A stretch of DNA of 64,000 bases from Eutreptiella sp. 'Long Island Sound 2002' (taxonomy: Eukaryota; Protista; Euglenida): NCBI GenBank assembly GCA_964036045.1, contig OZ038379.1, forward strand, positions 26,102,001-26,166,000, given 5' to 3'. Positions 9,633 through 45,000 of the stretch are shown here, one piece after another (the stretch's first letter is position 1; the number at the start of each line of letters is the position of its first letter). Below the pieces are notes generated by a model. It had not been told where the DNA came from. It searched no databases and saw nothing but the letters and a program-made list of their open reading frames with translations. A program made the translations under genes and the position numbers.

Positions 9633-11710
9633 GAGAGGGTGCTTGTGCACAGCGCGCGCTCAGCGCGGGCACAGCACGCACGGCGCGGGCACAGCGCGCA
9701 AATTACAAGGATAAATTGAGGATTTTTTGCTGCCATTGACAACATTCTTGCCTCTGTGGACCCTACTACACCCCTCACAATGTTGCACAACCTGATGTTT
9801 GACGCCAACCCACAGTCATGGGCGGAACCCATCCAAATGTCTCGAATGACCTTCCAATGCCATAGATGGGCAAATCGGTCAAACGGTAGTGTTGCGCTCC
9901 TTCTCGTTCTGACGGGAGTGTGCCGTAGTCTTCGGAGAGCGCCCTCTTTTGGGCCTCGGCTTTGACGTTGAGCATTGAAGCGATCTGCCCCGTGTGCGTG
10001 AATGTCCCAACCCCGGTGCCGACTGCGAATGTGACGTCCGCTGGGCCGGTAGAGATGGACTACTGGCGGTCGAAGCGGAGGGGGGACCGTGCCGGCCGGC
10101 TTGCCGCGCCTAGCGGTGACACCGACATAGACGGCGTATTTGACCACCGCAATGGCGGGGGATCGCGCCGCGTAGCCTCTAGCGATGCGAGGAGACTACG
10201 GGCTGACTGGGAGAGGGTGGCAGTGCCTGCAGAGAATACTAATGCATGGTAGTGCAGTGGGTACTGCCACGCCGAAGCAACCCAAAAGTTCGGGGGTTCA
10301 TGGATTCAACAGGTATGCATTGGAGGTCTTAGTTTCGTACTTTCATATGTGACGGTTATACGCAAACATGTCTATTGTCTTCTAGCTGTAACTTCAAGCA
10401 AGCGGCATGGCATTCCACGTACCGGGTTAGTGATCTCAACAGTGCAGCTACAGTACAGGCGATGGGGGACAATTGACTGACCTGACTGTCACCCCACACT
10501 TGCCCTGGGTGGCTTGGTGGGGGTCAGTGGTTCGCAGGAGCGGTTTCTGGCGGCGTGCTGCAGCGGCTGTGCAGCCGGCTGCAGCCCTAAAGACCCGAGT
10601 TCGATTCCTCTTCCGCAGGCAAGCGGAAGAGGAATATGAGGAGGACACGCGCCACCCGGCGGGCGGCGGTACCAGTGACGGAGGGCACTGCTGCAGGTGT
10701 GCCGTGCTTGGTGCCTTGCTTTTACTTTTTCATGATGATATACCTGACATTAGACACACTGACAACACAAATAAAAACTATCAGGACGAGACACGCCACC
10801 CATCCATCGGCGGTACCGATGGTGGAGGGGGATGCTGAAGGGGGCGGTGGCGGGGACCTCACCGGCGGGCCCCTGGACGGACAGACGAACCGGGGTTCGA
10901 ACCCCCGACGACGACGAGCGCCAGCCATGGCGCATACCACTAGACCGTCCATGCCTCTTACCCTATATGGCGCAAAATTGGTACAAAAAGGCCGAACTGC
11001 TATAGGGGTTCGAACCTGACTAGTCCTTTCCATATGGGGCGGAGGTCCAGTGCAAGCATATGAAACCAGACAGACCAGACATCCAAGGGCCCGGACCTAA
11101 CCAGTGCATACTCCTGGTGCGGGGGTTCAGTGAAGTCAGCACACGCCAGTGGCGGTTGAGCTTGACCGGTGACATCGCAAGGGGGAGGGGAGGGGCACAG
11201 CATTGGGTCCATTGTCGTCCATGTTAGCGTCCATTGAAAACTTGTCGCCAGCGCCAGCCTATCATGTAGGCGGCAAGGCCGCCGGAGAAGGACGCCAAAC
11301 AGATAGGCATCCAAAGGGTTCGAGCCTGACCAGTCCTGTCCACAGGAGGGGGGGTGGGGTGATGATAGCACATGCAGAGAGGGGTGTGAGTCTGACCAGG
11401 CCCCACCCCGGGTGTGGGGTTTCAACGTTGGAACCGGCGTCGCTCTCTTTGATAAGCATCAAAGATTTGCTGCCAATGCCGGCCAAGCAGGAAGGTGACA
11501 TGGCTGCAGATGGCCGCCATACTCGCATGTCTGTGGGCTCGCATTGTTCGGGCATGGTAGGCAGAGAATAGAGTGTGTGCACGGGTGGGCCGTCTCCTCG
11601 GTCCAGGTACGCGACTCCCCCCCCCCCCTCCGGGCCCTCCGGGCCCACTTAGTTACCAAGGGTCAATGGCTACTAGCCATACATAGGGTGGCGCCAAAGG
11701 CGCCCGAAAA

Positions 11711-12345
11711 TTTTGTCCCCTTTGCTGGGGACCCCCGAGAATGCAGGGGTGATGTACCATTTCCGCCCTCTTTTGGGCCCCAACCGTCCGGTGCTATTGA
11801 CGAAACCGGGACAATCTTTGAATCCACGCTTTGTTGTGTGGTGCATCATGGTGACCCCCGGCTTAGGTTTTGAGTTTTGATTTTGTTCCCTTTGTTGGGG
11901 ACCCCCGAAAATGCAGGGGTGATGTAGCATTTCCGCCCTCTTTTGGGCCCCAACCGTCCGGTGCTATTGACGAAACCGGGACAATCTTTGAATCCACGCT
12001 TTGTTGTGTGGTGCATCATGGTGACCCCCGGCTTAGGTTTTGAGTTTTGATTTTGTTCCCTTTGTTGGGGACCCCCGAGAATGCAGGGGTGATGTAGCAT
12101 TTCCGCCCTCTTTTGGGCCCCAACCGTCCGGTGCTATTGAGGAAACCGGGACAATCTTTGAATCCACGCTTTGTTGCGTGGTGCGTCATGGTGACCCCCG
12201 GCGTAGGTTTTGACTTCCGATTTTGTTCCCTTTGTTGGGGACCCCCGAGAATGCAGGGGTGATGTAGCATTTCCGCCCTCTTTTGGGCCCCAACCGTCCG
12301 GTGCTATTGAGGAAACCGGGACAATCTTTGAATCCACGCTTTGCT
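11711..12345 (+). repeat. 170-bp tandem array (about 3.7 units) inside element K
   Basis: Units start at 11711, 11881, 12051 and 12221. They are the reverse complement of the array at 26815-27690. Confidence 0.95.
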
Positions 12346-12908
12346 GCTTGTGTTGTTTGTGTTGTTTGTTGTTTGTGTCCAATTCGCCGATACCGGCATC
12401 TGAAGATCCCTGCCTCGAGCTTTAATACCCCGGCTCGAGGAGGAGGCAATCAGGGGTCTGGAGATCCCTGCCTCGAGCTTTTCCCCGGCTCGAGAAGGAG
12501 GCAAAAAGGGGCTTTCTTTCTTTCTTTGCTTTCTCGTGCTTTGCTTTGCGTTGCATTGCGTTGTGTTTTGTTGCGTAGTTCCGTTTTTCCGCGTTTTTTT
12601 AGGTAAGTGCGGCAAGGGGCGGTTCCCCGTATCACAAAACTTCCACCCAGCACAGTGCCCAAACCCAAACCCGTGTGTGCCGAAACCTAAACCAATACCA
12701 ATGCACTCGCCGCAGAGCGATGGAAGTAGGCACCCGGGAAAGCATTCGCCGCAGAGCGACGGGAGTAGGCACTGTCTGGGTGGCATGGTCATTAAGAATT
12801 GCGAATACAGGAGTTGCATTAGATACGTCTTTGCCGTGTTTCTTGCCTGTGTTCCACGGAATCCCGCATGTGTTTCCCTGTTTCCTGCGTGCAGTTCTTT
12901 CTCGCCCC

Positions 12909-22194: not shown

Positions 22195-22893
22195 GGGGGA
22201 ATCTTTGCACTGCACGTGCACTGCGCGCTACTTTTAGACTATGTTCCCCCCGAAGAGCCCCCAAGCAAACCCCTTGGAAATGCCCTTAGAATTAGGTGAC
22301 CCAAACTACCCCGGCTCAAGAAAGTTGCAAACTACCTTCCCTTCACATAACACACATCATGCACAACTGGAAAAGCCATGAACAGCGCGTTGGTCGCCAC
22401 CCTCAAGAATACAGAACTGTCTTTCTGTTCCATTGTCTACTAAGTACACATGGACTCCATCTTGCATTGGCGATTTACCACCCGTAGTGCATCTTGGTAG
22501 TACTCCAAGTGGATGAGCCCATCTCCCGCCATCCCAACCACCGTGGCAGGAACTCGCACGCTGTTGGAGCGGGTGTAGAACACCCGATCGCCAAGACTCA
22601 AATCCATGAAGAAAGTGTTTCTAAGAAAGGAGGAGGGGGGTATGAAGTCGTGTAGCATATGTGCAAGCACGATAGATCAATGTGTGCACACGAGCATTGC
22701 GCCTTGCCATGCCTTGACACAACCATGCTACGCCTTGCCATGCCTTGACCCAAACGTGCTACACCTTGCAAAACCTCCGCTAGGGGTCACCATGATGCCC
22801 CTAGGGGCCCCTAGTATCTCAAAGTGTGGGTCTCTAGTACGGCCAGACACCCAAATAGTTGCACTGCGCGCGCACTGCGCTTGAGGCTCCCCC
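22195..22893 (-). mobile_element. Harbinger-type deletion derivative (E3), TSD TAT, carrying a Tudor/SH3-like coding remnant
   Basis: TAT|GGGGGA ... TCCCCC|TAT. The segment MDLSLGDRVFYTRSNSVRVPATVVG (ATG at 22607) is homologous to the transposase N-terminus at 26479. Excision restores the LINE frame. Confidence 0.85.
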
Positions 22894-23510
22894 TATGACA
22901 CATTTGGTGGAGCCAGGCGGGACCTCTCCATCCGCTGGAATGGGCGTGGTACATTCTGTTGCGATGTATTTTCGTGACAGTAACTCGTCTCCGACAGCAG
23001 GTTGCTGGCTGTGTATTTGTATCCCGTCGTCAGAGGACTCTTCATCGAAGAGTGTGGGGCCCCCGCGTGGGGCCCGATACTCGCAAAGCTGGATGGAAGT
23101 CCGTGCACCCAATTGGCGGAGCATGGTAACATAGTCCCGAATGGGTGTCATCTTCCGGTCCACGGGGCGCTGGGCAATTGCCCAGACTCGGCTGTGGCGA
23201 TCGCGGAGTGCAGTTTGCAGCAGGGAGATGTAGCGGCAGCGGAACGCCCAGTACATTTGGTGCGGCCCTGTGCCTCCCCGATGGATCGGGTCGGTGAGAT
23301 GGAGTGCATGGGATGCCTGCGATGAGTACAAGGGATACAAGTGGCGGTGCCCCACAACACAGTCACCCACACAACAACACAGTGAGCCGCAACGAAAAAT
23401 TTTGGGTTGACCAAGTGACCCCCCCCCCCCCCCAGGGAACGACAAGGGGGGAACGTTAGCGCGCCGGGCGCGCGCCGGGCATCTTTTGTGACCCGTGCCC
23501 TGCCGGTGGA

Positions 23511-23665
23511 CTGTTGTTGTTGATATGTTGGGCAACATTATATGGATTTGCCCCTTGGCCCCCGGGACATCAGCAGATGTTTTGATTTGGGATGGGTATG
23601 GACCTTCTCGTACCCGAGGTGATTTCTTTGATTTCGAAGTTGGGGGCCATGATGGTGCTTATAAG
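23511..23665 (+). pseudogene. Transposase remnant of D, 5' piece
   Basis: [49 protein letters not shown], near-identical to the G transposase. Confidence 0.85.
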
Positions 23666-23829
23666 GGGGGAATGTTTGCCCGGCGCGCGCCCGGCGCGCT
23701 ACTTTTGTATTAACTATCCCGACTTCAGCCCCAGATTTACCCTCCCATGGATAAGCCCCCCAAATAGACCACATTGCACTGCACACCTTTCCTAAAAGCA
23801 CGTTGCAAAATAAAGCAAAATCTGTGACT

Positions 23830-26479
23830 TCAACCCCTCCAACTGTCATTTGTGTTGCACTTAACAAACAACATTGGTCCCACAAGTGTGGGTGTCAATA
23901 CATTCATTACAATAATGCTCCTTGCACTCATCACAAACTGCGACGGTGGAGCGTTCTGGCAACACAAAACACACACTTCCGCCTCATCCTCTGCCTCATC
24001 TTGCGTGGCGGCCGAGTTGCTTTGGTCAGTCCAAACCTGAGGCGGGACATGCTCCCATGGTCCGTAGGGGGGGTGACGGACTTGCCTCCGGATGCAAAAC
24101 TGAGTGAAATGCAACAAAATGCGGACTGACTGGTGCAACTCATTGGGGCCGCCACGCCAGATGTTCCTAACCAAATCCCAATGCCACAACCGAGCAAACA
24201 GCTGCTCAATGCGTGCCCTGTACCACCCATGGACATCATTGTAACCTTGTTGGCGGGCTGTCATTGTGCCATTCTTTCTTCCAATGAATGGCACAATGAC
24301 ATGAATCCGGCCTTTATAAGCGCCATCATGGCCCCCAACTTCAAAATCAAAGAAATCCCCTCGGGTACGAGAAGGTCCGTACCCATCCCAAATCAAAACA
24401 TCTGCTGATGTCCCGGGGGCCAAGGGGCAAATCCATACAATGTTGCCCAACATATCAACGGCAACAGTGACCTTGTAAACATGCGACGCATACTTAGGAT
24501 TCCACATGTCTGCACTCCATATCCCGCCAATGGAACTGATGGGCATGGAGTCTGTGAAATGCGTCATAAAGAATGGAAAATGGGGACAATGGTTGAAAGG
24601 ATTCAACCTGTCGGCCCATCGAATCTCTTGAACAACATGGTTAAGGTATTCGCGAGCACGGGCAACACTCTGCCGCCAGGCAACCTCCGAACCTTCTGCG
24701 TGAGACATGAAAGCACCGCTCTGTGCCGGTGGGGTGTGCTTCATCCAGAAAAAAAATTGAAACAATGACTCACGGTCGAGGAGCTCGTGGTGCCCGTACT
24801 TCATCCAAAATTCCTCCATTGTTTCGGCATCTGCACCCATCCGTGCAACTTGGGTACACACACAGGTGGACTTACACCGTTTCACCCACCATTGGACACC
24901 ACCACCCTTGCCATCGTCGTAGACGGGGTGCAAAGGGTGTGCCAAGTTCTTAGACACGGCGAGGAGATATTCCAAAATCTCATCCTCTGTCTTTTTGTTC
25001 TCCCTCGCAACCTCTTCCGCTGTGTACTCTCTTTCCGTGGAGGGTTCGACAGGGTTGGGCTGGGGCTTGGGTTTGCCTTTCGCGGACTTAGATTTGCGTT
25101 GAGGTTTGGGTTGGGGTTTGGGTTCAGGGTTGGGTTGAGGTTTGGGTTCAGGTTTGGGTTGAGGTTTGGGTTGAGGTTTGGGTTGAGGTTTGGGTTGAGG
25201 TTTGGGCTGGGCATAAAAAGCGGCAGGGGCCACAGTTCCCCCCTCCAGATGCTCCGTGTCCTTTGGTAGGTGGTGGCCTTTGCCAAAGGTGAGGATTTGT
25301 TGGACTATCTTAGGCACGGCAATGTCCTGTTCTATATAGTGGGGATGCTCCTTCGCCCAAAAATCAATGTGCGCTGTTCGAAACCGGCGCATGAAAATAG
25401 TGCGTTCCAGGGGCCCACATTTTTCCAGGGTCAGTTGGTTAGGTGTTGCAGACTTCGGGAACCGTTCCTTTAGTTGATCCAAAAAAGCAGTTTCCCGGCG
25501 ATGCAAGTCACCAATCTTCTTCTGGATGTGGTCCATGTACTGCAAAACCGGCGTGGCATGTAGGGTACCACTGCCGGCGGGGATCTTCGCCTGCCGCACG
25601 CGATGAGACCCGCCCGCCTTGAACGCTCCCTTGGACTGCTTCAGCTTCGTGTCCGCGAGAACTTGAAACCGGCGGCGGTATGCGACCCAATGCTGGTGGC
25701 GATTTGTTGCTATCCCAAAGCGGGGGAGGAAGCGGCTGGCCGCATTGTTAAATGGCCTGTGACAGACAGACACACACAACATATATGCATTGCATAGTAA
25801 TTGGGAAGACGGACACGATATATCCGACAGCCGTGACATCATCATGGAGCGTGAGGGCTGGCGAATACCTGCGACCCGTTGAAGGGGTGTTGTCTTCCAG
25901 CCATGCGCAGACTTCAGCCCATTGCTCGTTTGATAATTGCACGGGTAAAGTCTTCGCCAGCTGGCGAATTTCTTTATCACGCGCACGAGCCTTTGCTGAT
26001 GTTTGCGATTCACGCCTTCCTCGCCGTACCTCTTGGTCTTCATCATCCGAAAGTAGCCCAGGGGGCGCCGGAGAGGCGGAGCGCGATGGGGCATGGCTGC
26101 GTGATGGGGACCGCGATGATGTTCGTAGCGGGGAGCGGCCACGGAGAGGGGTGCCACCACTCGTGTCATCAAGGATGTCGGCGGCCGGTGGACTTGAGGG
26201 GGGTGGTGTGGGTGAACGGCCACGGAGATAGCTACCACCAGTCGCATCACCGGGGACGTCGGCGGCTGGTGGACTTGAGGGGGTTGGTGGGGGTGAGTCC
26301 CAACTCGGGATACCGAAGGAGAGGGCGTCGATGGGGCAATGATGGTTGATGACGCGCACCCCATCTTGCAGGTACTCCAACTCCACGTACCCTTCGTCCG
26401 TATGGCCAGCTACCTTCGCAGGTACGCGAAGCCCAGTCGACCGAGTGTAAAAGACGCTGTCCCCAATCTTCAAATCCAT
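23830..26479 (-). CDS. DDE transposase (DDE_Tnp_4 / Harbinger type) with N-terminal Tudor/SH3-like domain; 2 exons (26479-25869, 25756-23830), 845 aa
   Basis: A phase-2 GT-AG intron at 25868-25757 joins ORF 25748-26491 to ORF 23830-26364 in frame (611+1927 nt = 846 codons including the stop). Catalytic motifs FTDSMP, HDGAYKG and [11 protein letters not shown]; a (KPQP)n linker. Confidence 0.85.
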
Positions 26480-26814
26480 ATCGAAAAGCAAAAGAGGTCT
26501 GAGGACGCGAACAGCAAAAATTGATCTCCCGCAGCAGACACGCTGAATGTATCACCATATTACCAGCTCAGCGTGCCCGTTTCAAAGTGCACATGCACGC
26601 ATTTCAGGAACTACGCAACAAAACACAACGCAACGCAACGCAAAGAAGAAAGAAAGAAAGCCCCTTTTTGCCTCCTTCTCGAGCCGGGGAAAAGCTCGAG
26701 GCAGGGATCTTCAAGCCCCTGATTGCCTCCTCCTCAAGCCGGGGTATGAAAGCTCGAGGCAGGGATCTTCAAGTGCCGGTATCGGCGAATTGGACACAAA
26801 CAACAACACAAGCA

Positions 26815-27690
26815 ACAAAGCGTGGATTCAAAGATCGTCCCGGTTTCCTCAATAGCACCGGACGGTTGGGGCCCAAAAGAGGGCGGAAATGCTACATCAC
26901 CCCTGCATTCTCGGGGGTCCCCAACAAAGGGAACAAAATCGGAAGTCAAAACCTACGCCGGGGGTCACCATGACGCACCAGGCAACAAAGCGTGGATTCA
27001 AAGATTGTCCCGGTTTCCTCAATAGCACCGGACGGTTGGGGCCCAAAAGAGGGCGGAAATGCTACATCACCCGTGCATTCTCGGGGGTCCCCAACAAAGG
27101 GAACAAAATCAAAACTCAAAACCTACGCCGGGGGTCACCATGATGCACCACGCAACAAAGCGTGGATTCAAAGATTGTCCCGGTTTCGTCAATAGCATCA
27201 GACGGTTGGGGCCCAAAAGAGGGCGGAAATGGTACATCACCCCTGCATTCTCGGGGGTCCCCAACAAAGGGAACAAAATCGGAAGTCAAAACCTACGCCG
27301 GGGGTCACCATGACGCACCACGCAACAAAGCGTGGATTCAAAGATTGTCCCGGTTTCCTCAATAGCACCGGACGGTTGGGGCCCAAAAGAGGGCGGAAAT
27401 GCTACATCACCCCTGCATTCTCGGGGGTCCCCAACAAAGGGAACAAAATCAAAACTCAAAACCTACGCCGGGGGTCACCATGATGCACCACGCAACAAAG
27501 CGTGGATTCAAAGATTGTCCAGGTTTCGTCAATAGCACCAGACGGTTGGGGCCCAAAAGAGGGCGGAAATGGTACATCACCCCTGCATTCTCGGGGGTCC
27601 CCAACAAAGGGAACAAAATCGGAAGTCAAAACCTACGCCGGGGGTCACCATGATGTAGCACGCAACGAAGCGTGGATTCAAAGATTGTCC
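26815..27690 (-). repeat. 170-bp tandem array (about 5 units) in the 5' region of G
   Basis: GGGGTCCCCAACAAAGGGAACAAAATC recurs every 170 bp (about 26914, 27084, 27254, 27424, 27594). Confidence 0.95.
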
Positions 27691-27789
27691 TAAGTGCGCC
27701 CCCTTAGCGCACCCCCTAAAAGGTCACCGGTGGGGCACGGGTCCAAAAAGATGCCCGGCGCGCGCCCGGCGCGCTAACGTTCCCCCAAG

Positions 27790-28065
27790 GGCCGGATTCA
27801 TGTCATTGTGCCTCTCATTGGAAGAAAGAATGGCACTTTGACAGCCCGCCAACAATGTTACAATGACGTGCACGGGTGGTATAGGGCACACATTGAGCAG
27901 CTGTTTGCTCGGTTGTGGCACGCAAGATGAGGCAGAGGATGAGGCAGAAGTGTGTGTGTTGTGTTGCCAGAACGCTCCACCGTCGCAGTTTGTGATGAGT
28001 GTAAGGAGCACCATTGTACTGAATGTATTGACACCCACACTTGTGGGACCAATGTTATGATGCAG
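27790..28065 (+). pseudogene. Transposase remnant of D, 3' piece (further internal deletion), including the Cys-finger segment
   Basis: [43 protein letters not shown], then [15 protein letters not shown] and [24 protein letters not shown]. Confidence 0.85.
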
Positions 28066-29429
28066 CTCTACTGTTCGCGACACCTCAATAACGCCTATCG
28101 CTTCTACTGGAGATCGATGCGGTTGTGCTATCCTAACCCCCCATTCTCCCAACTTGCTTGTTGACCAAGATCGCCCTAAAAGGAGCGAGAGTGGTACTGT
28201 GTACCCCAGTTTGCAACTTTCTTGAGCTGGGGCAGTTTGGGTCACCTAATTCTAAGGGCGTTTCCAAGGGGTGTGCTTGGGGGCTCTTCGGGGGGAACAT
28301 AGTCTAAAAGTAGCGCGCCGGGCGCGTGCAGGGCGCGCGCCATGCAAACATTCCCCCAAGGGGTGGGGGACGACAAGGCGGGGTGAGGGTATGTTAGAAA
28401 TGTGCCAAACCGCCCACTATCCCCTCTTTAGCAATCCCTACACTTAATGGAAACATCCGTGGTGTCTGCGGCACATTTCGCACCCGCGCGCCCCGCGTTT
28501 ATGGCGCTACGTGTGCGCACATGGCACCCCAAGATGTTTGCCCCTGCAAACATCTTAGTGCGTGCACCCTGTACACACACTGCACACCACTTTCAGCGCA
28601 TGTAATGCAAGAAATGCCCCCAGATGAATTGGCCCCAACAAGGTATCCTCCATGAAACACAACGCAGGCATAGGCTTTCGCATGGCAGCCCGTTTGATTG
28701 CAAGCACCCACATCCACACAGCGGCAAACAGACTGTATGGTGCGACCGTCAGGTGGCCTCCTTCTGCACTGCATGCAGTGCGCACACACCCTGTGCTCAA
28801 AGGTTCTCTCTGTAACTCAAAGGTTCTCTCTGTAACAGACATCCGAACTCAAAAAAACTGCATCCAGTACAATCCTCACACATTGTTGCCATCAGCCATG
28901 CTTGAGAAAAGGCTTTAAACGAGATCTGGCTCCTGTTTTGGAATGTACTGTCTTTCCCTGCTCCTGGAGATGAGGAGGGCGCAAGCATTAGAGCAATGCA
29001 TATAGGGGGGGCATTCCAACGCAGCAGGTATCTGTGACCTTGCCAGCCTTGCTCATTCGTCATTTTGGGGGTGTGGCTGCAGACGTACAGTGCACTTAAC
29101 ATCTGTTTCCCTATTAAGGAACCTGAAGTGAGCTTGCTGGGGAGTGAATCCCTAATGCTACAGGTGGAAGCAGTTTCCGGCTGAATCGGACCCCTCCCCC
29201 CCCCCCCGTCCAAGGAGGCCAAAAGTCAGAAAAACAACGGTCAGACGGGCTCATGTGCTTGGACAAGCCCATGCTTGCGCGTGACACGCGGTACCAAAAG
29301 AACGTATATCGCCGAACACCTGCCCGTACCTCACCCTAATCACAATTGTTGCAACAGGGCACTACAACACTATGTGCAGGCAAATTTCAGCATGTTCTGG
29401 AGGTCCTCACTGCCCATCAGGGGCATCAG

Positions 29430-29950
29430 GAGCTGTGGAATAGAAGCCCTTTCCAACCTTGTGCCTCATCTTGAGCAATTGCACATGCTTGCCCTGACCG
29501 CCCTCATGCCGGGGAGGCCTCTGAAGGTTCGGGGGAAGGGCTGCGGATCGCGAATAGGACACGGTCCATAGGAGCATGATGCTCAAGCTCATGCCCATTC
29601 TGCATGTACTTCACGTGAAAGAAACCATCCCCACGAGTAGAAGGACCAGCAATTGTGGCAGGCACATGTCCACCGGTGGACCAGACGTACGCAACAGCCA
29701 TGCCGGGAGTGGCAACATCAACCATGGCTGAAAATCACACCAAAACAGACAGCATTGGGTTGCAGTTGCAAGTGGAATGTTGGTATGAGCAGGAGGAACT
29801 ACCAGAAGCATGATCCAGCTCCCCTTTCCCTCTACAATCAAAGCACAACCCCGTAACGTCACATTTCTGACCAGAAAAGCCGTGGTCAGAAGAATCCAGA
29901 AAAACGACGGTCAGACGGGCTCATGTGCTTGGACAAGACAGTGCTTGGAC
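29430..29950 (-). pseudogene. Diverged Tudor/SH3-like coding remnant, duplicated at about 32370-32940
   Basis: VAYVWSTGGHVPATIAGPSTRGDGFFHVKY resembles [25 protein letters not shown]. The nucleotide block is shared with 32370-32940 (for example GGTCAGACGGGCTCATGTGCTTGGACAAG). Confidence 0.55.
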
Positions 29951-39569: not shown

Positions 39570-39886
39570 AGGAGACACATACACACACACACCCTTCCCG
39601 CACCTCACACCAACACGCGCGCACACACAAACACACACAACCACACACAACTACACATGGACTCACCGACCCACCCACACACACACACACACACACATCT
39701 GCACAAACCCATCCACACACACAGGGAGACACACACACACAGAGAGAACCCCCCCCCCTAAACATTTAACCGTGACACATCCGCTGTCCAGGTACGTATG
39801 AGGGTGTGTGGGCAAGCGGTGTGTGGGTCTGGGTCGAGTGGGGGGCTGTTTGCTTTCATTGAGGGTATGTGTGGGTTTGTGCATGG

Positions 39887-39919
<33 letters not shown>

Positions 39920-40577
39920 TGATCTGTACTTTGAGAGGTGGATCCTTGTGCAGCGATGGGCAGGACGCCCCATTTGGCTCAGGTCTGCTGAGGCCTCTGT
40001 GGAACGTTGGACCCCCCCCTTCTGCGGAATCAGAACCTCTTTGGTTTGCTGGCTAAGTATCCAGTGTGTTTGCTCTCCCATGTCTTGTCAGAAAAGGCGG
40101 GCGGGCGACGTCATCTGCTACGGCCTCCTCCAGTCCCTGTGGGACAGGTACTGGGGGGGACTGCGGCGGCGGTGTTTTAGGCCTCCTACGCTTGGGGGCT
40201 GGAGGGGTGACGGGTTGGTGTGGGGACCTCAGCAGACCTGGTGGGTGCCGTGTGGGCCTGTGCAGGCATGGTTTTTTGTGGGGCAGGGGCGATAGTGCGG
40301 GTAGGGCGCGTTTCCGGTGCGCCGGCACTGGTGTGCACACTTTGTGGTGTCCCCTTTGGCAGCAGTGGCGTACCCCTCTCTGTTTGAGGGTGCGTCGGGG
40401 GCATGGGGGCAAGCTATGCAGTGGGCATAGTTGCAGTTGGGGTCTCCGAGCTATGTGCTCGTCCGCATGGTGGCCCAATTTGCAGCAGTCTTCGGCTGTT
40501 CGCCGTAGTCGCTTGCACGTCATACATGCCGAGGCCGAGTGTGCAGTGCATTGCGTCTGGCCAGACAGTGGCACGGG

Positions 40578-40651
<74 letters not shown>

Positions 40652-41154
40652 TCTGTACTTTTAGAGGTGGATCCTTGTGCAGCGTTGGGCTGGACGCCTC
40701 ATTTGGCTCAGGTCTGCTGAGGCCTCTTTGTGACGTTGTTTCCCTCCCTTCTGCGGAATCAGAACCTCTGTATTTTGCTGGCTAGGTATCCAGAGTGTTT
40801 GCTCTCCCGTGCCTCGTCACGAAAAGCGGGCGGGCGACATCTCGGCCACGGTCTCCTCCAGCCCCCGTGGAACTGGGGCTGGTGGGGACGGAGGGGGGGG
40901 TGTTTTCGGCCTCCTGCGTTTGGGGGCTGGAGGGGTGGGGGGTTGGTGTGGGGACCTCAGCAGACCCGTAGAGATACGTGCAGGCCCTTGCAGGCGTGGT
41001 CGTTTGTTGGGCAGTTGTGCACGTGCAGCAAGTGGGCGCTTCCGGCGCGCAGGCACTGGGGTGCACACTTTATGGTGTCCCCGCTGGCAGCAGTGGCGCA
41101 CTCCCCTTTGCTTGAGTGTGCACCTCGGGCACGGTGGCAGACCATGCAGTGGGC

Positions 41155-41204
<50 letters not shown>

Positions 41205-42351
41205 TGTGTGTGCCGGAGGGGGGGGGGGGTAAAGGGAAATGTGTGTGGGTGTGGGGACTTCGGTGCATGCTTAGGTGGTGTTGGTGTGGCTTTTCTGCCA
41301 GTGTCCTGCAAAAATGGTACGAAATTCGTACGAAATTCGCACGAATTTCGTACGAATTTCGTCCTCAAAGTGCCTTAGATACAGGCAGTTTGAATGTGGT
41401 TGTTACGAATTTCGTACGAAGTTCGAACAATTTGCAAAAATGTGCAGCATTTTTGTGCAGAACCGGCAGGAAAGCCACCCCGGCACAAGCCCCACACCTA
41501 CATGTACATATACGCAAGCCCAAGGACAAACACACACAGCCCCACAATTACAGGAGCCCCCTTGATACATTTCAAGCACCCTTCCTACACAAACACAGGC
41601 CCAAACACCAACACATAGATACCTTTAGTTAAATGAGCCCTCTTCCTAAGATCCCTAGCTGCTTGCATGCCCCTCCCCCCCCCCCAACTCGTGGCAAACC
41701 GGCCCCTCCGCCCATAGCACACAACACAGCAACACAACAACAACACAGAAGAACAACACACATGTCCTCATGACCGGACCCCACCCACCCAAACATACAT
41801 GCACGCACGCATGCACACAAGCACACCCACACCCACACGCACACCCATTCATCCATGAGCCCATCCACCCATCCAACCATCCACACCCAACCACACCCAG
41901 ACACCCACAACCCAAGAACCACCAATGCATGCACTTATCACCCACGCATGCACACACCATCCACCCATGCCCACACAAACAACAACCCCTCCTCCGACCA
42001 CGCGCACACACACACAGATAGACACAAACGCATGATTGAGGGTATGTGTGTATTTTTGTTCTGCACGAAAATGATACAAACTCGTGAAAATTGTTCGAAC
42101 TTCGTGCGAAATTCGTACGAACTTCCTACAAACTTCCTACAAACTTCCTACGAAATTCCTACGAAATTCGTAACAACCACATTCACGGTACCTATGTATG
42201 AGGCACTTCGGGGACGAAATTCGTGCGAATTTCGTATGAATTTCGCACCATTTTTGCACGACACTGGCAGAAAAGCCACACCAACACCACCGATGCATGC
42301 ACCGAAGTCCCCACACACACACACACACATTTCCCTACACCTGCCCCCCCG

Positions 42352-42387
<36 letters not shown>

Positions 42388-42508
42388 ACAAACCCACAAA
42401 CATTTCCCTATACTTGCCCCCCCGGCACACTGACACACAGACACACACACGCACACACAGAGACACCCACACACCCACACACATTTCCCTATACCTGCCC
42501 CCCCCCCG

Positions 42509-42574
<66 letters not shown>

Positions 42575-42810
42575 ATACACAAACACACACATACCCTCAA
42601 TGAAAGCAAACAGCCCCCCACTCGACCCACCAACACCAACACCACCGATGCATGCACCGAAGTCCCCGCACCCACACACATTTCCCTATACCTGCCCCCC
42701 CGGCACACATACACACACACAGACACAGACACACCCACGGACACACACACACCCACCCACACACGTTTCCCTATACCTACCCCCACAGCACACACACACA
42801 CACACACAGA
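39570..42810. repeat. (CA)n/(TG)n-rich composite repeat: about 730-bp tandem duplication plus inverted arms
   Basis: The block at 39921 is repeated at 40650; 41233-41432 is inverted against 42089-42335 and 39835-39900 against 42565-42630. Confidence 0.8.
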
Positions 42811-45000
42811 GGTAGCCATGTGACCTAGTGGACCCCCGGATGGGTCGGGTACGGGCGCAGTGTTGCAATCCACTTCGTGGCCGGTGTGGGCGCTTCGATG
42901 CCTCCTAGGGAGTTGCTGGCGGGGAAGGTCGGGGTGTAGAGCGGCAAGGGCAGGGTGGTGGCCAATTCGGCCAGCCGGTCGACTTCATTGTTTCACATGA
43001 TGTCGGCATGTTGTTGCACATCGCGCGCGTCAGACGGCTGTCGGTGTCCAGGAATCCAACGCACTGTGATCGACTTGCGTTGTGTGACTTGGGCAGCCAT
43101 CTGTCGGAGGTCAATATCGGATGCCTCACGATGGGGATTCTGGGGGCCATAGTCCACCACGGCTTTGTTGTCAAGGGTGACAGTAGATTCTGGGTTCAGC
43201 CGCCACGCACAGTCCCATCAGTTCCGCCCGGTAAGAGGTTTGAGGGCCATGTACACGCGCGATGAGATGGAATCCGCCGCATCTGATACCCATGCCCGCC
43301 CGCGGACCCCCGTGAACATCAACATACTCTATTTGCACAACCGATTTACTGCCATCGTTGTGCCATTCCCCGTTAGACGGTGGCAGGCCCCGGGTGGAGA
43401 CCTCGAAACCGGATACCTGAGTCTTTGCCCACCCTTCTAGCACGTCTCCATAGTCTGGCACCGCTGTGGCAGAGGAGTAAGAGTGATACTTTCTAGCCAC
43501 ATTGGGCTGGCCTACCGTGGGTTGTTGGGTGGCACGCAGACAGCCATCTTCAGTGTCTTCACTATTGTACATGTTAGGTCCTCCGGGGCGTCATTGCATG
43601 GGCTGAAGGGAGATCCCCGGCATCGCTCCCATAGATTGCAGGAGGGCAACATACGTAAGTATGGGCGTCTGGGTGCGGGGGACTGGTGCATCTAGGGGAA
43701 AGGGAAACAGTTCCGGGTGCGCATGCATTGCTTGCCGCATGCTGGTCACGTATTTACGTATGTAAGCCCGGTATATCTGCCGCACCCCCATGCCTGCTTC
43801 CTCGGGTGGAGTTCCCAATAGGTGATGGTTCTTAGTGGCCTCCATGCCCTTTGGTGCGCGTACGAAGTCGGCAGGAAGACTGTCTATTCGGTGTAGCGTT
43901 TTGTCGGAAGGTAAGAGGACAAGGCGGTGAAGCCGGCGGGGGAGGAGCACAAAATTGACTAGCTGGGCCCGTTCCCAACCGTTCAGGGGCACCGATTGGT
44001 ACTGGGCCAAGTCTGACTGTACAAGGCCCAAGTAGTCACCCCTGGCCTTGTGGGCCCAAGAGGGATGAGCCATGAGGTGCCCCAGGTATCGAAGGATGGG
44101 TGGACAGACCTTGTGGGGCACTCCGTCCCAAAGCACGGTTTCATGGCTAGTGGACGGGGCCCATTTGTATATTTGTGTCTTTGTGGTGTTGACGCGGAAG
44201 CCAAGGACTGCGCTGATGCGGGAAACTTGAGACAGCACTTGTTGGGTGGTGCCAGCATCAAGGGAGATGAATGCGATGTCGTCCATATACACAAAAAACT
44301 TCACCGTTGGGAACCGCCGCGACAAGGTACGGTGGAAACATTCATACACGACGCATAAAAGGAGTGGGGAAAGAGGGCAGCCTCTTTGACCCCCCCGTTT
44401 TTGGTGGTACGTGTGTTGTTGGCCTTTCGCCGTGAAGCAGCACTAGGTGTGTTCATATGCATGCCGAGGATGGAGATCATGGTAGGCGGGACCCCTGGAG
44501 TGTACATAGTTTCCCATAGGAGCGGGTGAGGAGTGCTCGGGAAGGCTTTAGCAATGTCAAGCAGGACGATATATCCATCGCCTTCGAATTGCAGGGTGTT
44601 GCTCCAGAGGGCTAGTGCCTGGGTCACCGTGGTGTGACCCTTACGCCCCCCTGTCTGTTGGGGGGACAAAGCGTCTGTCGGTGGTTTTTTCAGGCGAAGG
44701 AGGATCAGCTTGCACGGTGTTTGGTACATGCAGGAGGAGACGGCTATGGGCCTGTAGTTGCTGTCGTCCCTGGGGTCGCCCTTTTTGTATAGCAGTGTGA
44801 TGCGGCTGTCACTCCAGGTCCGTGCTGATATAGGGTCCATGGCGCCTTTTCGGGGAGACCAAGAGGTACGGTGGTACATGGTCCATTCCTACCGCCTTTC
44901 CTTTCGGGGCGTTAAGGCAAGAAACAAACTCCGTCCAGGTTGGAGGTTCACCGAATATGTGGGGGTGCTCCTTGTACGTGTCCCGGAGCAATTTCGAGGC
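42808..45000 (-). mobile_element. Degenerate non-LTR retrotransposon (RT + RNase H), truncated at both ends
   Basis: RITLLYKKGDPRDDSNYRPIAV, LDIAKAF, GVKEGCPLSP, VYMDDIAF, YLG; RNase H WHNDGSK and GPQTSYRAEL. It carries frameshifts and stops. Confidence 0.9.

Follow-up and report, generated by a model that had tools for sequence, protein, structure and literature searches.

A Harbinger-type transposon of Eutreptiella that probably encodes one spliced, helper-less transposase with a predicted Tudor/SH3-like barrel at its N-terminus

Transposons of the Harbinger type are the classic example of a transposase that depends on a second, DNA-binding protein, and the mobile elements of euglenids are, to our knowledge, almost undescribed. 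Here we consider a transposon in a 64,000-nucleotide stretch of the genome of the euglenid Eutreptiella sp. 'Long Island Sound 2002' (assembly GCA_964036045.1, contig OZ038379.1, positions 26,102,001 to 26,166,000 of the forward strand); this whole stretch is referred to below as the window, and coordinates are those of the window unless otherwise noted. Repeat analysis and direct reading place the transposon at 23666-27786 (4121 bp), with a gene on its minus strand that runs from a start ATG at 26479 to a stop codon at 23830-23832. An earlier reading of this locus (hereafter, the original prediction) had proposed that the gene joins, by splicing, an N-terminal chromatin-reader-like module to a Harbinger-type DDE transposase.

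The gene consists of two exons separated by a 112-nt GT-AG intron (25757..25868, minus strand), with GT at 25868-25867, AG at 25758-25757, and a pyrimidine-rich (T/G/C-rich) tract preceding the AG; the intron is defined from the sequence itself, from indels among copies of the element, and from comparison with the related contig L053. Exon 1 (25869..26479, minus strand, from reading of the open reading frame, or ORF) is 611 nt long and encodes the barrel described below, a Pro/Ser-rich linker with two copies of a 27-residue repeat (a direct repeat of 2 x 81 nt at 26130-26291), and a basic/helical stretch that continues to a codon split as AG and G. Exon 2 (23830..25756, minus strand) is 1927 nt long and is delimited by its ORF, by Pfam, and by alignments to the related sequences P0001, L022, and L008. 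These exon lengths place the intron in phase 2, and the summed exons amount to 846 codons. Both the coordinates and the arithmetic of the phase-compatible intron in the original prediction are right, and the two exons are colinear across the junction with their counterpart in L053.

That counterpart was reached through an exhaustive protein search, which returned the protein P0090, encoded by L053, a genomic contig of assembly ERZ25074135; it represents a divergent sister family (56% identity) that has no intron. The final 18 complete codons of exon 1 pair with L053 residues 5-22 (E 0.003), and the first residue of exon 2 aligns with L053 residue 24 (E 2e-66), leaving exactly one L053 residue for the split codon: a Lys in L053, and in the window an Arg read from the AG and G of the two exons. 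The intron is missing from L053 at exactly this junction, with no stop or gap in its place, and L053 retains barrel remnants upstream and a DDE core downstream. An intronless sister family implies that the intron was gained or lost inside the transposon lineage. A metagenome relative, L021 (54% identical), shows an acceptor-like site and has conserved residues upstream of its first Met. We note in addition that positions 5537-7244 of L053 present the same order of parts as the window gene (barrel remnant, linker, junction region, helical domain, DDE) without interruption by an intron.

One might instead see two genes here, in the manner of canonical Harbinger elements, with the upstream ORF (243 residues when unspliced) encoding, as barrel, linker, and basic stretch, a separate helper in place of the Myb/SANT partner, and the transposase beginning at Met 74 of exon 2, its first Met. 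The frame of ATG 26479, if left unspliced, stays open to 25748 and ends just past the acceptor, canonical PHIS elements do have two genes (PMC4482050; PMC2836001), gene callers begin the relatives at an internal Met, and we obtained no RNA support for the splice. Nevertheless, we regard this arrangement as very unlikely, given that L053 continues colinearly over the exon 1-exon 2 boundary, that the 73 residues ahead of Met 74 are kept (L053 has 56% identity to them, and L021 retains them in part), and that indels in the intron shift the read-through frame in well-kept copies such as L024.

The pattern of indels bears equally on the converse reading, in which there is no intron at all: an uninterrupted 844-residue ORF (26364-23830) crosses the intron in another exon-1 frame, and the transposase could be taken to start at ATG 26364, with the barrel frame a chance overlap. 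This ORF is indeed open through exon 1 (in that other frame), the intron, and exon 2. Across 16 copies compared from the start codon to the KPQP repeat, however, frame-breaking indels occur in the intron only, clearly decayed copies apart (L024 and L033, both well kept otherwise, have indels of 7 + 10 nt, L041 has one of 7 nt, and L029 and L031 have one of 1 nt each), and the density of shared substitutions is likewise highest in the intron. These intron indels (17, 7, and 1 nt in length) argue that the 844-residue frame is open by chance, those of 17 and 7 nt breaking it outright; the region is, moreover, G+C-rich and has few stop codons. Within exon 1, shared substitutions are distributed over the three positions of the barrel-frame codons as 25/25/44, an excess at the third position (p = 0.02); the same test over all variable sites is not significant. 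Since the barrel frame also folds confidently and is conserved across divergent families, as described below, we consider the absence of an intron extremely improbable. Taken together, these sequence comparisons leave the reading of a single gene, spliced once, well supported.

Exon 2 encodes, in order, the continuation of the exon 1 region, a clade-specific helical domain, the KPQP spacer, a pre-core region, the DDE core, and an out-of-frame tail. Residues 415-546 of exon 2 (24118..24513, minus strand) match the Pfam family DDE_Tnp_4 (PF13359; E 3.9e-7, 30.3 bits against a cutoff of 24.8), as do the relatives P0001, P0104, P0118, and P0120. The catalytic triad comprises D402 (24550-24552), which lies just upstream of the Pfam match, D477 (24325-24327), and E517 (24205-24207), and all three residues are invariant in an alignment with L008 and P0001 (alignment A4). 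The KPQP repeat (25078..25230, minus strand; repeat family D2) has a 12-nt period; the (KPQP)n spacer and the Pro/Ser-rich linker of the original prediction are both present. The helical domain upstream of the core is common even to the 31-33%-identical P0104, P0118, and P0120, from which the barrel is absent. By eye, the C-terminal ~80 residues of P0104 are chromodomain-like and the C-terminal ~90 of P0118 PHD-like; Pfam finds nothing significant in either tail and we do not use them as evidence, but if they are real, the clade would attach reader-type domains repeatedly.

Members of the family end in a CxxC...CxxC...CxxC...HxC finger, which is kept in 15 other copies and in relatives with 47-53% identity, and which matches the Pfam B-box models weakly (E ~1). 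In the window copy this Cys/His finger is out of frame owing to a 1-nt deletion (23954..23955, minus strand): all 15 compared copies have one more base, and here ~42 unrelated residues replace the finger, up to the stop at 23830. The extra base at 23954/23955 is seen in part of the copies represented in contigs from public sequencing runs, and short high-copy derivatives of the element also carry the deletion variant. A second lesion was found in alignment A4, where 57 residues are gone in frame after exon-2 residue 182 (~25209, at the upstream edge of the KPQP repeat); these residues, which include a conserved basic motif, are present in other copies including L008 and have homologous counterparts in P0001. 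Because of the frameshifted finger and the missing 57 residues, what had been described as a complete 845-residue protein is a damaged version, even though its D/D/E triad is intact. As judged from its sequence, the window copy is dead or crippled, and it is only a broken example of its family.

The N-terminal residues 1-55 (26315..26479, minus strand) are predicted to form a five-stranded Tudor/SH3-like beta-barrel. AlphaFold2, run on an alignment of 16 natural variants (alignment A1), three of which come from other elements and are 34-49% identical, returned a model with a mean predicted local distance difference test score (pLDDT) of 86 and a predicted template modelling score (pTM) of 0.69, in which strands occupy residues 8-12, 18-26, 31-38, 41-49, and, following a short turn, 53-55. 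Foldseek comparison of this model with the PDB yielded nearly all Tudor domains (PHF20, SMN, SND1, TDRD3, and PHF1/19), with template modelling (TM) scores of 0.65-0.73 and a probability of 1.00; the accompanying E-values of 0.014 or weaker are expected for a domain of 55 residues. In all-against-all comparison with VIA-align, the best match was the Tudor domain of PHF19 (Z 9.1, root-mean-square deviation 1.4 over 55 residues), with a PWWP domain (Z 8.9), the KOW domain of NusG (8.8), and the Tudor domain of MTF2 (8.4) as runners-up, and searches of the ESM Atlas also gave PSHCP, DsrB, KOW, the SMN Tudor domain, and the barrel of a long terminal repeat (LTR) element integrase. The barrel has no sequence-profile match to the Tudor, Agenet, chromo, PWWP, or MBT families, and a word-based protein search with it found close copies only. 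On the predicted model, residues 1-55 are a small barrel of Tudor/SH3/KOW type, the kind of which is not told by the fold alone. The proposed Tudor/SH3 barrel is thereby recovered, with Tudor domains at the top of the Foldseek matches; its further description as chromatin-reader-like goes beyond these comparisons, in which KOW, PWWP, and integrase-type barrels match about as well as Tudor.

Divergent families retain the barrel at their N-terminus, with 34-49% identity, although for the most divergent barrels the link to DDE genes rests on the window and L053. Two further variants occur in the window itself. A 73-residue ORF at 29504-29725 (minus strand) opens with a divergent barrel of ~40% identity; for this second, sister variant the genome contains at least 5,500 candidate places, and its presence in MMETSP transcripts of Eutreptiella gymnastica points to a euglenid alga as host. 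A third variant, 49-51% identical, lies at 22443-22607 (minus strand) in a short element (22195-22900) that has related GGGGGAATC... ends and one unit resembling the 170-bp repeat described below, and that appears to derive from a sister family by deletion.

What the barrel might do can be approached through its conserved residues and its charge. The two best-conserved residues are Y11 and Y36, and, when the predicted model is mapped by strand register, these would fall at two of the four cage positions of SMN-/PHF1-type Tudor domains, with Arg/His18 and Asp/Asn39 at the other two; the aromatic cage that the original prediction proposed to check for would thus be half present at best. The barrel could genuinely read methylated lysine or arginine and so direct integration to chromatin bearing such marks, in keeping with the identity of its top structural matches (the histone- or methylarginine-reading Tudor domains of PHF19, MTF2, PHF1, SMN, and TDRD3), its acidic surface, the conservation of Y11 and Y36, and the known capture of reader domains by transposons (bioRxiv 10.1101/2021.11.30.470311; PMC12477816). 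With two cage positions apparently non-aromatic and no sequence match to Tudor families, we view a reader of this kind as rather unlikely.

Alternatively, the barrel might bind nucleic acid, in the manner of the C-terminal SH3-like domain of retroviral integrases, of KOW domains, or of the PSHCP Tudor domain, and recognize the 170-bp repeats or the target DNA in place of a Myb partner. The barrels of KOW, single-stranded-DNA-binding PWWP, PSHCP, and Rous sarcoma virus integrase are among its structural or feature matches, and the subterminal repeat array adjoins the gene. The barrel is acidic, however (isoelectric point, pI, ~5.3; nearly all variants have pI 4.7-6.7 and a net charge of about -3), a property more in line with a ligand that is a peptide or protein than with DNA, and basic stretches are found elsewhere in the protein; we accordingly hold nucleic-acid binding by the barrel to be distinctly unlikely. 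Our tentative preference, held with less than even confidence, is that the barrel would serve for tethering to a protein or to chromatin, or for assembly, and would not bind DNA. A stronger version would make it a working tethering or reader module common to a whole euglenid radiation of DNA transposons, several Harbinger-like families among them, in which the transposase docks on a host protein or a chromatin mark and so dispenses with the Myb/SANT helper; this we consider rather unlikely, but if the docking were real, no DNA transposon selecting its sites via a Tudor-type domain would have been known before.

No second plausible gene was found between the inverted ends of the element, where the space left by the gene is taken up by the 170-bp array. 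Neither exon has a Myb match in Pfam at E up to 1, and a sample of ~50 copies of the family contains no extra coding sequence, the only extra being an in-frame insert of 171-185 nt. These three results support the original prediction that the element itself carries no Myb/SANT gene. We also looked for a Myb-like domain within the protein by folding the natural intronless paralogue in L053 via alignment A3: the junction region is predicted at low confidence (pLDDT 34-67), only a helical hairpin at residues 88-158 is confident, and no Myb-like bundle is seen. The repeated ORFs of 67 and 84 residues that the plus strand shows at 26521-27693 are artefacts of the 170-bp tandem array and not genes.

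The element is bounded by imperfect terminal inverted repeats of ~40 bp that begin with GGGGGAA. The repeat on the 3' side of the gene (23666..23706) starts with GGGGGAATGTTTGC and was identified from inverted-repeat pairs I5-I8, and that on the 5' side (27746..27786) from repeat analysis; the same ends are found in other copies. The stretch from the start codon to the 5' inverted repeat contains ~5 subterminal direct repeats of 170 bp (26809..27700; repeat family D1), the number of which differs from copy to copy. Elsewhere in the window, at 11710-12582, the 170-bp array and the stretch just upstream of the start codon are copied (93-96% identical) outside any copy of this family. An Rfam search of the window gave no match.

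The insertion site can be read directly, as the element is nested in an internally deleted copy of its own family, the left part of which lies at 23447..23662 (plus strand; inverted-repeat pairs I1, I3, and I5) and the right part at 27790..28357 (plus strand; repeat analysis and direct reading). This host element bears its own AAG duplication, and its type of deletion joint (24468>27725) is common in the public runs. Its uninterrupted reading is known from the intact gene (...TATAAGGGCCGG...), so the empty site is directly visible and the target-site duplication is 3 bp: AAG stands on the left (23663..23665) and, by direct reading, on the right (27787..27789), where an uninterrupted family member has ...TATAAG/GGCCGG... 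with AAG once. Matching 3-bp flanks are found in 13 independent copies from other loci (AAG three times, ATA twice, and GTT, TAT, TGA, AGT, AAA, AGG, TCT, and TCA once each). The duplication tends to be preceded by C (9/15 sites) and followed by G (13/15). A 5-bp duplication of the form CNNNG was considered and ruled out, as the nested insertion has T, not C, ahead of AAG; nor do the duplications follow a TWA rule, the central three bases being variable.

At a genome-wide scale the family is abundant: in the 2.28-Gb genome, the DDE part has >19,000 candidate places and the N-terminal module >4,000. Most copies are internal-deletion derivatives, the commonest deletion joints of which also appear in contigs from the public runs, and parts of the element are contained in estuary metatranscriptomes. 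Other fragments of the family are present elsewhere in the window. With more than 19,000 candidate copies in the genome, a single nested insertion needs no special targeting and provides no evidence of it; the original suggestion that chromatin targeting might explain the nesting is therefore unsupported.

Comparison with described systems helps to place the family. PIF/Harbinger, Pangu, NuwaI, and NuwaII elements combine a transposase gene with a Myb/SANT gene, ISL2EU elements have a YqaJ partner, and Spy elements encode a transposase alone and make no duplication (PMC4482050). With PIF/Harbinger elements the present family shares a DDE_Tnp_4 core with D/D/E residues, inverted repeats starting with G, 3-bp duplications, an autonomous size of ~4 kb, and many short non-autonomous derivatives; unlike them, it has no Myb/SANT gene and no TWA target, and its transposase has a barrel at the N-terminus, a long linker, and a zinc finger at the C-terminus. 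NuwaII is similar in its 3-bp duplication, with C preferred before it and G after, but duplicates TNA and has a Myb/SANT gene, whereas the family here has variable duplicated bases and no second gene. Spy is similar in having a single, helper-less transposase gene, and inserts in AAATTT without duplication, in contrast to the 3-bp duplications in G+C-rich sites observed here. A single-gene PHIS lineage, as suggested in the original prediction, already has a precedent in Spy (PMC4482050).

With regard to the barrel, the predicted domain has the same five strands, size, and topology as members of the Tudor 'royal family' (PHF1/PHF19/MTF2, SMN, and TDRD3), and differs from them in its sequence (10-22% identity, with no hidden Markov model match) and in having only two conserved aromatics at cage-like positions. 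Fusions of a small barrel or reader-type domain to an integrating enzyme are known from chromoviruses, from Gypsy-10 of Ectocarpus (a C-terminal Tudor domain), and from hAT-Chromo fusions; these are mostly retrotransposon integrases with C-terminal chromodomains, whereas here the enzyme is a Harbinger-type DNA transposase and the barrel is at its extreme N-terminus. Capture of chromo and PHD reader domains by transposons has been documented (bioRxiv 10.1101/2021.11.30.470311), and a Tudor domain on a transposable element was reported as the first of its kind in 2025, in a Gypsy element of Ectocarpus (PMC12477816). That Ectocarpus case was the only report of a Tudor domain on a mobile element in the literature searched, in which we found no Harbinger-type transposase with a Tudor-like N-terminus.

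We conclude that the gene is probably the only one of a 4.1-kb cut-and-paste transposon of the PIF/Harbinger (PHIS) type, and that it encodes one spliced, helper-less protein. In intact family members this product would comprise, from its N-terminus, an acidic barrel of ~55 residues, a disordered Pro/Ser linker, a basic/helical stretch spanning the exon junction, the helical domain, the KPQP spacer, the DDE core, and a B-box-like zinc finger at the C-terminus. The enzyme would cut at the GGGGGAA... inverted ends and leave variable 3-bp duplications, and its long N-terminal region, together with its zinc finger, would take over the roles of a helper (recognition of the ends, nuclear import, and assembly).

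Several observations weigh against this interpretation or parts of it. In a comparison of the element with four public runs, no RNA contig bridges the intron (25868/25757). RNA-seq across the 25868-25757 junction had been proposed as a check in the original prediction; two estuary metatranscriptomes gave thin contigs on both exons, with one 199-nt exon-1 contig matching exactly, though these could derive from contaminating DNA. The codon-position evidence in exon 1 is weak, and L053 is itself decayed, with a stop and a frameshift upstream. The small-barrel shape is generic, as the best Z-scores of unrelated models are typically 7-8; the barrel has no Pfam match up to an E-value of 1, and comparing its profile with PDB sequences returned chance matches only (E 1.5). 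Any function of the barrel is something we infer from a predicted model, and a helper gene may be encoded elsewhere in the genome. Should our interpretation hold, an abundant lineage without a partner gene, and with barrel and finger on one spliced protein, would represent another way of building a Harbinger-type element and would offer a testable case for chromatin tethering or assembly of a DNA transposase.

Two other features of the window were observed in passing. At 39840-42619, a 2.8-kb stretch has at its two ends inverted repeats that are long and identical and contain GGGGGGCTGTTTGC; the 239- and 300-residue ORFs inside it have no Pfam match. At 43594-44349 (minus strand) lies a reverse transcriptase fragment, with a match to RVT_1 (E 1.3e-6) just below the Pfam cutoff.

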